Part shown: positions 34,501-43,500 of the stretch, in pieces
Layout of the letters: each line of letters begins with the position of its first letter
How positions within the stretch are numbered: position 1 is the stretch's first letter
The notes under the pieces: generated by a model
Databases searched by the model: none
Seen by the model: the letters and a program-made list of their open reading frames with translations, nothing else
Told to the model about the DNA's origin: nothing
Program-made: the position numbers and the translations under genes
Source of the DNA: Ascidiella aspersa
Lineage: Eukaryota
NCBI GenBank assembly: GCA_963924565.1
Contig: OZ004609.1
Span: forward strand, 31,744,001-31,808,000
Direction: 5' to 3'
Length of the DNA stretch: 64,000 bases

Positions 34501-37500
34501 GCTTGACCTATGTTGAAATATATTGTATCGTCTTTAGGTTAGCACAGTTTTTATCTTTTTAATTTTTTTTAATCCTGTTAATTATGTCGACTTGTGCTCG
34601 ACAGTGTCGGTCCAGTTTCAGTTGCAAAAACTTCCCTACTTGTTTAGTGGGCACTAGTGAAGATAAGCCGGGACGGTCCGGGACGGCCTTTCGGTAAAAG
34701 AGTTTCTAAAGTTACGCTGTACTGGCAAAAATGTTTATCTAAAAGATTACTTTTTAGACGTCCCGATATGACGTAATTGTGACTTCATCTCGAAAAATTT
34801 TCATGGGCTCTGGGAAGTAAATTATTCGACTTTCACCCCTAATAGTGGGACCGGCGTTTTCTTTAGGTGTACTGCGACATGCAAACATCGGGCGGAGGTT
34901 GGACGCTGGTGGCCAGCATCCACGAGAACAACATCCAAGGAAAATGTACGATCGGAGATAACTGGTCGAGCGACCTGGGAACATCCTCGAAAATAAACAG
35001 TAGGTTAACGTTACAAGTGCCATGTTAGGTAAAGCGTGTAATAACTTTAACAGAACGCCCATTTTGTGACTAGGTAATTATTTGATTGATGTATAAATTA
35101 AACAAACATTGTGGGAAAACTTGTGAAAATCTGATTAAATATATACGTTAACATCTCCATCACTTTGCCACTAAGGTGAACACGTTTAGGTGATTTGACG
35201 CATTCTTGTACCTTAAAGTTTAGTGTCAAACTCGATTTAAAAAGAAAACCGGCCTATTTCACTTTTTTGTAAATTAACATCTGTATTATGAAAACCCTGT
35301 ATTAATACAAGCCCATTTTATGACGTTAATTTGGTGGTTTAATTTGCAACGAAAAAAAAGTCGAAAAATAACTTTTTGGCAGGTACCAAAAATTGGGAAT
35401 CGACATCTAGCTTCGGCAATGTTGAAGCAGCGACGAGCAACGATTACAAAAGTGCTGCTTACACCCGTCTAATTGTAAGATAAAATAACATTACATGTTT
35501 ATATGCCCAAAACATATTTTCTTCATTGGACAGTTTTGACCTACTACAACAAGCTAGAAAATAAGGAGAAATTCAAGAAAATTAAAACCTCTATCTTAAA
35601 AATAAGTAAAACTTCTAAATAATCACCCAGTTCCTTGAGCGTGTTAAACATTTGTATAATTTATTTGGTCCTAGAAATTTTAAAAGGAAATGTATATAAA
35701 TTTCTGTCTGTGCGATAATACGGTACTTAAACATTCCGAGATAGATTGCAAAGAGGCGTTTTCTGAGCTATTATTAAACTTCCTGAAAAAGGTGCTCAAT
35801 CAAAATCCTGTCATTCAGGGTGATGACGTCATGATTTGGCAAGTCCCCAATGACGTAGCAGCTTCCGAATGGAGTTCTCAAGCCTTCCTTAAGTACTACA
35901 CAACATCAGGGTTCCTGAGTAACTACGGGGGAACTTTGCAGATCCTCTTTTCCAAGTATTTCCCGGTCGTCAACAAGACATCGAATTATGGTATTACATC
36001 ACTTAGAAGTTAACCACAACCATACTTTTGGACAAAAATAATTATTGTGCTCTATACTAAACTTTTTTTAATTATGATCTAACTTCTGATCTTTCCAGAA
36101 ATGTTACTTTGTCCAACGGTGTTTTTTACTTTCGTAGTCAGAAGAAGTGTTTTCAGGTGGATTTCGCCGCCTGTGCCAAATCGTGATGCACTAACTTTAT
36201 ATTATTATATACGTTGTCTTTTATATTCTTATACGATTAGCATCCAGCAGTTTAGCCTCAAATAGGGTACTTTAATATCAAAGAGAAACTTAGACCTGTA
36301 ACTTTTTTGACGACGCTTTGGAAAAGTTGGCCTGGGCCGTAACTTGGGTGATATAAAATTTTGCTAATCGTTATTTAGCTGTAAATTTGTTGGTGTCAAA
36401 CACATGCATCGAAAACAAACAAGATAAAAATCCAATTAAAAAAATATAAAAAAAACGCTTACTAAAATTTTATTTAATTTTAACCATAGTAACCAAAATG
36501 CATAATTTATAAATAGTATTTATAAACAAAAATTGAAATTTAGTATGACCTGTGTGCTTGCATAAAATAGTTTATTAATGTCACGTGTAGGTTTTAAGTC
36601 TAGTCATTTATCCAATTTACTGAAATCAAATAATTCTGCCCGAAAAACATAGATCAAAGTTATCCTATTTTTTCTAAAAGAGCAAACTCAAGTCACTTTG
36701 CCCGAAAGAGTTGATAATTTGACTGAAATCATTACAACCCTGCAAATCAAATTGTCCAAACAATGGGCAGGCCGTTTTCTTACACTTTCATTTTGCTCAG
36801 ACTATCGCGCGGCTGGCGTCAACTATCTGCTGGCCTCTATGAACCAGAGCGCGGAACAGATGACTGGCAGCGTGGCGAACTGGTTCCAGTACAACTACGA
36901 CGCGTCCGACAACAAGCGAATCTCGGACGGGGGCAATGACATGTACGACGATGGAAATAAGGTGCTGAGCATAGGCGCTCCCACGGAGCAAGGGTGGAGG
37001 GGGGGATTGCCCCCCTCTGGAATTTCAAAATTCGATTATTTTTATTGTTTATAATTGTAGCCTAATAGTATGTATTACTTATGAAGGTTGTGAAAGATTT
37101 GTATATACATTTTTACTGTTAACTATTAAATTAAATGCCATGGTATGTACATATTAATATCAAAAGTAGCATAGGTTAAATTAAGTGAAAATATCAATAC
37201 CCCCCCCCCTGAAAAATTTGCTGCGAGCGCCTCTTGTACTGAGTGTATTTATAGTGGTATACAGTAAAGTTGTTTGGTGCAGGCCCATTTAATTAAACTA
37301 GTAAAAGTTTAGCTCTGTTTCTAATAGGATTTTAAAATGACCCCTGTTAAGTGTTTTTAAATTAAATAACCAATAAACTTCACTTCGCACTCACATGGGG
37401 TCGAAAATTATAAGCCAGAAAGATCCATGTCAATCCTAATGTTTGTGAACCTATAAATAGGTTAGTTTACATGGCAGAACGTTGTTGGGCATACAATATT

Positions 37501-40500: not shown

Positions 40501-43500
40501 TCAATCGATCCTCATGGGTTACACCTTGCTGTCGAGTAGAAGGTAATAACGTATCAACAAATCAAACATACACGCATTAGGTTAACAACTGTGATCTAGC
40601 CCTTCTGAAGCTGATTTTTGACGAACGATAACGGCTTACGTTTAATTGCTTGTACTAGCAGAATGTATGGTTGTTTCTTGACTCGCTCTTCTCTCAGCCT
40701 GTGTATCTCAGCTGGTAGTTTGGTAGGATGACCGGAGGTCGTGATTTCGAACCTCATTGCAGGCTAGTGGTTTTTCTAGCCTGCCCTGTTTGCATCATTG
40801 ATCGACAGATTCGGCGAGTCTTCAATGGCATTCGGTGTACCTATCAACCATTAAGAAATGCAGGTTGTCTGTTAAGTTTGGTGCGTTTAAGTCCACCGCA
40901 TCAGGAGATGAGCGTATGGCTCTTCCAAATATCATATTTGCCAGCCGTGATTCGCGTTATTAAAATCTGGTTTAGCCATGTTCGATTTTTCATTCCGATA
41001 GCGATACTCGATATATTGCAAAAGAGTACGTCGTTCGTCTATTTATATATTATACAAAAAAAAAATTTTAACCGAAGGCAGTAAAAATTTGCTAAAATTG
41101 TAAAAAAAAAATTTATCTGACAAAACAAAGCTACCGACAAGGTATCACTTTTTATAGTCTAACCAACAATTGTTGCTTCCCAAACAAAATTTCTGTCCAA
41201 TAATTTGTGTCACGTAATTGACCGTAGGCCTACTATAAATACGACTTTCCTCAAAAATCATGTTTGTCACTTGATTGTTAGCAAATTAATTTTGTTTCTT
41301 GAAAAACGAGGCATAATAACATATAGCAATTCCTGACTAAAATAATAAAATTTGGACTTAAGGTTTTAAGGTTGCACTATTGTAAAAAATTAGTTACACG
41401 TGGGATCTCAAAAGTGCACAATACAATTTTGAAAGTATAGTTACAACTTACTGTATGTTGCTGCAGAAGCGAACAATCCCAGGAAGCAGTACCTCAGCGG
41501 GAAGTGGAGGCTGTACTGAGGATTGCGATGCGAAATCTAAATAAAACTGAGAGGCCATCGGGTAGGTTGACTCAACTTTTCATTTTTTTAAATTTAACGG
41601 CTAATGTTTCAATTTATTTTAACAAGATAACGTTGTTGCATTTTTCAGATACTCATTACTTAAAAATAACTTAAAAAAATCAATTTCTCTAAATAAAATT
41701 TCTTTGGTCACAAAAAATGTGTCGTATTTTTTTACTGTATTACGATTTGCAGAGTGTCATGAAGATATTTTACTAGTGTATTTAAAAGTACTTTCCCGTT
41801 TATGTAGGGGCATTGTTTATATTGCCTAAATAGCGTGTAAAACACACAGCATGCAGTAAAACCTTCCATCTACCTCTTTTCCCTTAAACCTCGCTTACAA
41901 AGTCTATTTAGAAATACAAAAAAAAGTCTATTAAGAATCAACGGCTTGTAGAAATATAGCGCCTTATTCAAAACAATATTGCTGGCCAATAAGCGTGTAT
42001 AGCCAAAAAATAATTTATTTTATTCCTGACTGATTTTCCTCGTTTAAAAAGCATTTTGTCAATTCATTTCTTTAAGCTTTTTATTTTTCAGGTAGAAACA
42101 CAAACTTCTTTTTTTTTTCAGGCGTAAATTTAAGTAAAATCCATAAACAATATAACTGGTATTTGCTAAGTGAAAGAATAATTGATAGTGAGCGATTTTG
42201 TCAGCAGGGCATCACAACATTATATTTGCAGGCTAAATATAATATATATATATATATATGTATATATATTGAAGCAGTAGTTGCCATTTTATATGGGCAA
42301 CACTTGATGCAGTATTTAACACAGCCGGTTCCCACAGACTTGCCACCTTTTATCTTTTCGTAATATATATATGTATATATACATACCGAACAAAACTTCT
42401 CACACCAAAGGTAGGAAAATTCGCAAGAATACATTTACAGCGGTTCGATTTCATTACTTTTGCAGACATCAGCTGCCAGCGACTGAGCGAAAGCCTGGTG
42501 GTGCCGGTCAGCTACGAGCAGGGATCCAACGAGGAGGTCATGGCCCGAGTACCTCCAATGCAGAGGGCCCGTGTCGACCCAGGGTTTATCCACTTTCGCC
42601 CCATCAGCCCCACCGGTGACCCGTTCGGGATCTGTCCCGGTGTAAAGTAAGAGATGGACAACGATTTTAGTGGAAACCCCTGGGTTAAAAACGATTTTTT
42701 TATGGGGATCTTTTGTCGACTACTTTACTGCAAACAAAAGGAATAATGTGGTTTGCAAGACTAAAGTTACTTATTTCACTTTCTTTGAAAAAATACATAT
42801 ATTATAACAGGAATGGCAACATTAAAACCTCGTTTTTGAAACCCAACTTTTTTGGATAAAATTAATCTCGTTTAAAACAGATGTAATTTAAGAGACTTAA
42901 TAAATCTGTAAAAATAATATTGGGAAAATCCCTTTATCCATCTTACAAATTTCAAAAATACAGTGTTTTAACATCGTAGATTAATGACATTATTTACATA
43001 TAATTACCAATAGTTGCTACGTAAACGTTATACACAAAATCTAATGTTGTATTGAAATATTGCTTGTTTTAGCAAAGCAGACGATTTGCTATGCGCTTTG
43101 TGATTATCTTATTCTAAACCAGGGGTTAAAGTACAATAAAAAAAAATTCTTTACACATATAATGGTTTAGACGTCACAAAGTTACGTCATAACACGCCTT
43201 CTCCAAAACATGTAGTCTTAGGAAACCTGAGGTTATCGTTTAATGTAGGGCACTCATATGCTGCGAAATCTTACTTTAAATACATTTAAGGAGATAACGA
43301 GATAGCCTGGTGAATAACGGTCATGGCCTGTTAAGAAAATAACGCATTTTACTGGTATGATGTACATGTAAACATGATTTTTTAAGTCCTATTCAACCGT
43401 TCCGCCAAACTTTCGCTACTGTTCTAAACTGCAGTATTTAAATATACCAATTTCAACTTAAATGCATTGAAAAAGTGCAATTTATTGAGAACAATAATAA

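Follow-up and report, generated by a model that had tools for sequence, protein, structure and literature searches.

An ascidian intelectin gene with a nested domain of an unnamed family that has bacterial relatives

Results and Discussion

Six exons interrupt an intelectin gene

We analyzed a 64,000-nucleotide stretch of the genome of the ascidian Ascidiella aspersa (NCBI GenBank assembly GCA_963924565.1, contig OZ004609.1, positions 31,744,001 to 31,808,000 of the forward strand; hereafter, the window). It carries on its + strand a lectin gene in which the intelectin fold is split by a nested domain, here called X. Positions below count from the first nucleotide of the window. Homology and splice sites define 16 coding exons between 31587 and 44352, with a coding sequence of 1863 nt that specifies 620 amino acids and a stop codon, and all of these exons have AG/GT boundaries as read from the sequence. 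From its N-terminus, the encoded protein comprises a signal peptide, a CxCxC motif, two exons of collagen-like G-X-Y repeats, four intelectin exons, the six exons of X, and three further intelectin exons that end in ...STFLIFTR. Per exon, it is 55-80% identical to a protein of Phallusia mammillata.

The gene opens with coding exon 1 (31587-31727), identified from its open reading frame and sequence, which holds the start codon, the signal peptide, and the CxCxC motif, the last resembling the N-terminus of the relative P0139. This exon has no coverage in the aligned RNA reads, and its donor is uncertain, with an alternative at 31703|31704 that is likewise phase 0. Two collagen-like exons follow: exon 2 (32814-32885) has AG/GT sites and a tblastn match to residues 20-42 of the Ciona savignyi relative P0073, and exon 3 (33483-33534), which ends in phase 1, was read from the sequence and has a weak tblastx match to the neighboring paralog. 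The fibrinogen-related part of the intelectin domain starts in exon 4 (34081-34199; tblastn to P0073 residues 63-93 and splice sites). The hallmark exon of intelectins and fibrinogen-related domains is exon 5 (34867-34999), with a Pfam Fibrinogen_C match (E = 4.8e-4), tblastn support, and 44 paralogous exons in the genome. Exon 6 (35383-35474; tblastx, tblastn, and splice sites) and exon 7 (35819-35990; sequence and overhanging RNA reads) complete the intelectin portion upstream of the insert. Exon 7 ends as ...AAT TAT G|gt in phase 1, at the point where vertebrate intelectins read KYPVKYGEGKC.

X then occupies 36801-41561 as six AG/GT exons between two intelectin exons, totaling 714 nt, or 238 codons. 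Insert exon 1 (36801-36961) encodes the N-terminal helix and the Y-x-Y-D...I-x-DGGxDMYDxGN motif, and is supported by alignment, 36 paralogous exons, and an RNA joint to 37635. The other five all have RNA joints on both sides: insert exon 2 (37635-37693) is conserved in the neighboring paralog; exon 3 (38153-38258), with the HPFVMMMW strand, matches five paralogs by tblastx; exon 4 (39416-39571), with the GTGADSGG and DPSICEVYF motifs, has 41 paralogous exons; exon 5 (40406-40542), with the LMGYTLLS strand, matches paralogs by tblastx; and exon 6 (41467-41561), which ends in phase 1, encodes the C-terminal helix, with hhalign homology reaching the equivalent helix of P0073. Both introns bordering X are phase 1, and the phases along the insert run 1-0-2-0-0-2-1.

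Intelectin coding restarts at 42466 in coding exon 14 (42466-42646; ...PGFIHFRP...CPGV), which is supported by tblastx, tblastn, and an RNA joint from 41561, and whose P0073 counterpart aligns to residues 180-270 of Xenopus XEEL. It continues in exon 15 (43532-43614), in which tblastn and alignment with vertebrate and insert-less intelectins find the canonical ligand-site positions replaced, and finishes with the C-terminus and a TGA stop in exon 16 (44249-44352; tblastn and sequence). An earlier reading of the letters alone, the original prediction, had described an intelectin split by a 238-amino acid, six-exon insert with phase-1 flanks. The same exon boundaries emerged from our reading of the sequence, with RNA joints throughout, and all seven peptide motifs that it listed lie where it had placed them and in the proper frames.

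Insert and host exons are expressed as a single mRNA

RNA evidence came from a single stranded RNA sequencing run on A. aspersa; about 6% of the run was read and aligned over 5,991 nt. Reads cross GT..AG joints along the whole insert: 36961>37635 (22 reads), 37693>38153 (25), 38258>39416 (15), 39571>40406 (6), 40542>41467 (3), and, into the downstream intelectin exon, 41561>42466 (4). Seven more reads overhang the acceptor at 36801, and the overhanging sequence equals the final 30 nt of coding exon 7, up to 35990. All of the signal comes from read pairs with the first mate on the minus strand, as expected of a plus-strand mRNA under the usual stranded protocol. The reads link each insert exon to its neighbors, as the chimeric intelectin with a nested domain on one transcript that had been proposed would require, and the insert and intelectin exons are a single mRNA.

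The original prediction had itself raised the possibility that the X exons are a transcript of their own, nested inside the intelectin gene. All that speaks for this is the length of the introns and the fact that other parts of the genome hold X genes that stand alone. Against it, reads connect 35990 to 36801 and 41561 to 42466, the reading phase is continuous across the insert, and annotations in five other ascidians, which draw in part on transcripts, show the fusion. We rejected the nested gene because RNA joints tie the X exons to intelectin exons on both sides, and we give it practically no chance. The reading frame through the insert is also under purifying selection: of the 14 positions within exons at which RNA and genome differ, 12 are synonymous third-position changes (P = 8e-5). 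The individual sampled for RNA carries two nonsynonymous heterozygous variants, Gln>Pro at 38227 (7 of 17 reads) and Ala>Val at 40488 (10 of 20 reads).

A subtler alternative is that the X exons act as a cassette and that a normal-length intelectin, with 35990 spliced to 42466, is a substantial or even the main isoform. Positions 36801 and 42466 each open with AC, so that the phase-1 G plus AC gives Asp at either junction and skipping the insert would keep the frame; this coincidence had been pointed out from the sequence and holds. The genome also contains a related X-less gene with a phase-1 intron in the same position, which suggests that a protein of this subfamily could be viable without X. 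However, the insert is present in every RNA joint seen, all four reads that enter 42466 come from 41561, and at about 4x depth in the one run no loose end at that acceptor rose to the reporting threshold. No skip isoform appeared in reads or annotations, at this depth and with an aligned stretch too short to span 35990>42466. We consider a substantial second isoform distinctly improbable, while a minor insert-skipping isoform is possible.

The surroundings of these exons hold a few other features. Interspersed repeats lie in introns at 40581-40840 and 33059-33430, with copies at other loci (e.g. L018); RNA reads with unrelated flanks map to the copy at 40581-40840, and copies of this repeat are therefore transcribed elsewhere. 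Three tandem tRNA-Cys(GCA) genes (44808-44879, 45033-45105, and 45399-45471) lie on the - strand just 3' of the lectin stop codon.

The host is an intelectin with replaced ligand-site residues

Residues 74-226 and 477-568 of P0073 align to residues 16-169 and 180-270 of XEEL, the first segment at 6e-37, and the insertion is clean, with about 250 residues placed between XEEL positions 169 and 180. By Foldseek, the AlphaFold model of P0073 matches intelectins across the insert at E 2e-11 (4WMO, 6USC, and 4WMQ at ~1e-11; target TM-score 0.63). The window gene has the fibrinogen-related N-terminal segment of intelectins with its GGGWTLVAS core (34867-34999), and it has the intelectin-specific C-terminal half, to which its exons align as P0073 does to XEEL. 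It departs from the family in two respects. Intelectins form one contiguous globular domain of ~280 amino acids, and here 238 codons intervene between 35990 and 42466. The calcium-dependent site (TEH, E274) and the aromatic box W288/Y297 are likewise not preserved as such. Classification as a ficolin does not fit either: a collagen-like stalk is present, but Fibrinogen_C matches only over profile positions 4-60 and the rest is intelectin-specific.

In intelectins, W288 and Y297 form the aromatic box that is crucial for specificity, and E274 is a binding-site residue (PMC12800186). The window gene reads LPES for NTEH and Gly at the E274 position, and its GYGTH...Y segment is gone. Unrelated residues occupy the H263, E274, and Y297 positions in all twelve aligned hybrids as well as in the window gene, and in the C-terminal alignment a Pro/Thr-rich loop substitutes for GYGTH in the hybrids. 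The vertebrate intelectins in the alignment have the T/V-E-H motif, GYGTH, and the aromatic residue, plus the Pro-Glu of E274. Two of the three insert-less paralogs of the A. aspersa genome keep the T/V-E-H motif, the GYGTH loop, and the following aromatic, and the third has AEF for TEH. Because these ligand-site residues have been replaced, the classical intelectin site is very likely nonfunctional or altered in the hybrids.

The nested domain defines an unnamed family with many bacterial members

Neither Pfam, scanned with single exons and with full-length relatives, nor NCBIfam has a family that covers X; among PDB sequences, a profile search returned chance matches only (E >= 0.026), and ESM Atlas gave no usable match for X. 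The original prediction had been unable to name a family, and the Pfam, NCBIfam, and PDB sequence searches agree with it on this point. It had also suspected bacterial relatives, and here the harvest was large. A word search from a single protein region was insensitive (two matches) and alignment queries were more effective; when one genome per bacterial species was scanned, 335 homologous stretches turned up across hundreds of species, in Bacteroidota, Verrucomicrobiota, Latescibacterota, Zixibacteria, Planctomycetota, Chloroflexota, Cyanobacteria, and other phyla. In hhalign, an alignment of 23 bacterial X sequences matched the ascidian hybrids at 99.4% (E 4.7e-21, 200 columns), and the match covers the entire insert, last helix included. 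Identity between bacterial and tunicate X is about 20-25%.

Members share full-length profile similarity together with the motifs YxYD..IxDGGxDMYDxGN, an HPF/PGLF strand, GADGxG, and DPS, all of which are found in the window exons. The columns that do not vary between bacteria and tunicates hold mainly Asp, Gly, and Asn, and they fall in three loops, I-x-DGGxDMYDxGN, GADGxG, and DPS; five Asp and one Asn are invariant between bacterial and tunicate X. By these alignments, X is a family of about 200 amino acids without a name. The name "choice-of-anchor D" on one bacterial match was considered and rejected, as it belongs to an adjacent Ig-like domain and not to X.

The domain's setting in bacteria is recurrent. 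It usually stands right after the signal peptide; behind it come Ig-like, HYR, PKD, fn3, or SprB repeats and a sorting tail of the type IX secretion system (T9SS), and some bacterial proteins of 4,000-5,800 amino acids hold X three or four times. In tunicates it is also found as tandem arrays and beside CUB or Sushi domains. A protein from a metagenome contig (P0079; contig L103, gene 726-5726) carries two X domains together with five thrombospondin type-1 repeats and one PA14 domain. Next to its gene lie a split cyclophilin gene and an Rtf2-like gene, which give the contig the look of a microbial eukaryote; since P0079 is eukaryote-like, X would not be confined to bacteria and tunicates. Another metagenomic sequence, the 311-amino acid protein P0150, consists of X only and is encoded at 6001-6936 of a 77-kb contig (ERZ27299104:k141_155129, L101). 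Around it, methyltransferase, glycosyltransferase, and sulfotransferase genes are densely packed along with many genes that have no Pfam family, and the contig may come from a large virus.

Models of one bacterial and one Ciona X agree with each other, and they predict an N-terminal helix, a beta sandwich of roughly 10 strands, and a long C-terminal helix. Fold searches with these models gave weak, at most suggestive results, and we assign X to no fold family. The best Foldseek value was 2e-4 for the Ciona model and 1.2e-3 for the bacterial model, the latter with START-domain rows competing. The best matches were non-catalytic N-terminal beta-sandwich domains of GH65, GH94, and GH116 glycoside hydrolases and phosphorylases, and comparison with the galactose-mutarotase-like/GH65 beta sandwich gave a VIA Z of 7.9, which is within the background range stated for the tool.

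The hybrid is shared among ascidians

A paralog search covering the 308-Mb genome found intelectin and X exons together, in the same order and on the same strand, at at least 10 loci. Six paralogs were compared in detail and are colinear throughout, at 30-60% identity (tblastx). Exon conservation, the RNA joints, and the synonymous bias put the insert far beyond chance. One hybrid paralog is arranged head-to-head with the lectin gene: its collagen-like 5' exon lies on the - strand at 483-545 of the window, and the remainder is upstream (G000:C3:31735656-31742869). X without intelectin forms tandem clusters on other contigs, with identical internal exon boundaries.

A profile of the first X exon matched 407 proteins. 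Full-length hybrids are annotated in Ciona savignyi, C. intestinalis, P. mammillata, Clavelina lepadiformis, and Styela clava, under the names "uncharacterized" or "Fibrinogen C-terminal domain-containing" only, and the architecture is common to all three ascidian orders sampled. Amphioxus and vertebrate intelectins are without the insert and cover only the intelectin part, 25-28% of the hybrid profile. Whether this makes the protein the "new" lectin of the original prediction depends on the sense of the word. It has no name, and the literature that we searched contains no description of a split intelectin or of domain X, though one in Hayashibe et al. 2017, on Ciona intelectins, is conceivable; gene models for it are, on the other hand, already public in Ciona, Phallusia, Clavelina, and Styela. 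As far as we searched, the hybrid is unnamed and undescribed, yet present in public annotation. A 2026 survey of horizontally transferred Ciona genes does not include it either.

In a tree of the intelectin columns, each available tunicate sequence is a hybrid or groups tightly with one. Three tunicate models that look insert-less (P0222, P0225, and P0184) stand beside hybrids. P0184, from C. intestinalis, looks insert-less by profile search but turned out to be a hybrid that breaks off within X; P0225 is all but identical to the hybrid P0178, and P0222 groups with the hybrid P0176. We therefore did not take the four changes counted on this tree as multiple gains, as the three models look like truncated hybrids. 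The intelectin tree is compatible with a single origin of the hybrid.

Origin of the nested domain

Tunicate X, whether from hybrids, tandem arrays, or proteins with CUB or Sushi domains, forms one clade on a long branch (FastTree, unrooted; Shimodaira-Hasegawa-like support 100). The clade lies outside the bacterial crown, and its nearest neighbors are metagenomic sequences, at least one of which looks eukaryotic. Among about 30 source-identified matches and the named matches of two word searches, tunicates are the only animals with X. As far as the incomplete sampling goes, this distribution fits a single early acquisition, which might have occurred by transfer or be the outcome of loss elsewhere.

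How X entered the intelectin gene can be approached through an X-less relative from the hybrid subfamily (L105, G000:C3:3151001-3159000, - strand, ~4603 and 3583). Its C-terminal exons are of the hybrid type, and a 1-kb phase-1 intron sits exactly at the insertion site, reading ...KHA G|gt ... ag|GT TCA. No intron is present there in the genome's typical insert-less intelectins. The original prediction had recognized a signature of exon shuffling in the phase-1 flanks, and the X-less relative adds to it, since exon shuffling into an existing intron predicts a phase-1 intron at precisely this place. This gene may preserve the empty ancestral site or may have lost its X exons secondarily, and the two would look alike. 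We propose that a multi-exon X module, with phase 1 at both ends, would have been shuffled into a phase-1 intelectin intron before the ascidian orders diverged.

The ultimate source of the module invites speculation. Tunicates acquired cellulose synthase by horizontal transfer. By analogy, X could have passed from a microbe to the stem lineage of tunicates; it would then have gained introns, been spread by exon shuffling into extracellular proteins, become nested in an intelectin, and replaced its glycan site. We regard this full scenario as tentative and on balance doubtful. The data are compatible with it, since X turned up in no named animal outside the tunicates, whose copies form one long-branch clade that is not nested in any bacterial crown group.

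A putative binding head and its alternatives

Taken together, these data lead us to a reading that we hold to be probable, though well short of certain: the gene encodes an expressed, secreted ascidian intelectin into which X was shuffled as a module, whose collagen stalk bundles chains, and in which X serves as the main or an added binding head in surface recognition. The stalk would bring chains together, so that several heads are displayed at once. The canonical calcium and aromatic-box glycan site of the intelectin part appears to have decayed in the hybrids, and the Asp/Gly loops of X (DGGxDMYDxGN, GADGxG, DPS) probably bind calcium; the original prediction had suggested calcium or glycan as their putative ligand. 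The whole protein would then be a multivalent secreted receptor with X as a calcium-stabilized head, and its likely role would be to recognize microbial or particulate surfaces. That X took over recognition in this manner is, in our assessment, the most likely account, because the classical site is replaced, bacterial surface proteins carry X at their distal tip, the acidic loops of X do not vary, and the stalk would bundle the heads.

Several considerations weigh against this account. Its basis is sequence and context. The window gene was compared exon by exon, and full-length natural relatives (P0073 from C. savignyi, P0161 from Phallusia, and others) stood in as proxies for the folding and family work; exons 1-4 (31587-34199), which include the stalk, have homology as their support. 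Both AlphaFold models are moderately confident, with predicted local distance difference test scores of about 60-90 in X and means of 53-63, and the fold matches of X are at noise level (VIA Z <= 7.9, with 158 aligned residues and a root-mean-square deviation of 3.8). A Ciona subfamily of hybrids (P0177, P0184) reads ...DGGNGTF... where DGGNDMYD is expected; having lost this motif, it indicates that the first Asp/Gly motif is not indispensable. Finally, three hybrids, the window gene among them, keep a Glu equivalent to E262, so some residual function of the intelectin site is conceivable.

Part of this evidence can be turned toward a different role, in which X is a structural spacer or an oligomerization or regulatory module and recognition stays with the intelectin part or another of its surfaces. 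Such a role would be in keeping with fold searches that yield no functional relative, with a Ciona subfamily that tolerates decay of motif 1, and with a window gene that retains Trp at the W288 position in addition to the E262 Glu. But recognition by the old site is hard to square with the replacement of H263, E274, Y297, and the GYGTH segment in all hybrids; a passive spacer would also not be expected at the distal N-terminus of long stalked bacterial surface proteins, the usual place of a ligand-binding tip, nor to hold five Asp and one Asn invariant from bacteria to tunicates. We judge the spacer explanation unlikely. Less likely still by a wide measure is that X is catalytic or part of a glycan-processing enzyme, making the hybrid a lectin-enzyme fusion. 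The suggestion comes from the GH65, GH94, and GH116 domains at the top of the fold matches, but those domains are non-catalytic parts of their enzymes, the scores fall within the tool's background, and no catalytic domain stands beside X in the tunicate or bacterial proteins examined.

The hybrid bears on how recognition proteins evolve. Research on intelectins has addressed them as microbe-specific lectins of chordate mucosal immunity, with a fold taken to be a single compact unit. Ascidians have retained a nested-domain lectin for hundreds of millions of years while the classical site apparently decayed, and they thereby offer a natural experiment on how such a protein exchanges the module with which it recognizes its targets. 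The work also defines a family of about 200 amino acids that is abundant at the tips of T9SS surface proteins and reused in extracellular proteins of tunicates, so one binding experiment on X would inform both bacteria and tunicates. The gene structure offers a testable case of exon shuffling, with a module that has phase 1 at both ends and is possibly of foreign origin. Were horizontal transfer true, a chordate pattern-recognition lectin would have a borrowed bacterial adhesin tip as its recognition head.

Comparison with known systems

The closest relatives of the host are the intelectins, including human ITLN1 (4WMQ/4WMY), Xenopus XEEL (4WMO), and lamprey LSVL (7E1E), with which the hybrid shares the GGGWTLVAS segment, a C-terminal half ending in ...LIFTR/FYR, secretion, and multimerization. 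It differs from them in that its fold is split by a 238-amino acid foreign domain, H263, E274, Y297, and the GYGTH loop are replaced, and a collagen-like stalk is placed in front. That stalk gives it the general plan of ficolins and collectins, with a signal peptide, a Cys-rich N-terminus, a G-X-Y stalk, and, as in ficolins, a fibrinogen-related head displayed in bundles. The head of the hybrid, in contrast, is an intelectin fold with a nested domain and not a complete Fibrinogen_C or C-type lectin domain.

For X itself, the nearest comparison is with bacterial T9SS cargo and adhesin-like proteins such as MBI3134778.1 (Bacteroidota), MEQ9188856.1 (Cryomorphaceae), and MGF1484498.1 (Opitutales), which have homologous stretches of about 200 residues with the same four motifs. 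In those proteins X is terminal or in tandem, with Ig-like, HYR, fn3, or SprB repeats and a sorting tail behind it, and it is never nested in a lectin. The N-terminal beta sandwiches of GH65, GH94, and GH116 give the best, though weak, structural likeness to the bacterial and Ciona X models, but X has no sequence similarity to them and no catalytic partner domain, and the scores stay within background.

The arrangement as a whole has a parallel in the integrin alpha I-domain, which sits in a loop of a beta-propeller and became the ligand-binding site. The analogy extends to mechanism alone, since the two belong to unrelated folds and families, and the hybrid shows no sign of the conformational signaling known from integrins. 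What the two would have in common is a whole domain, nested in a host fold, that takes over recognition.

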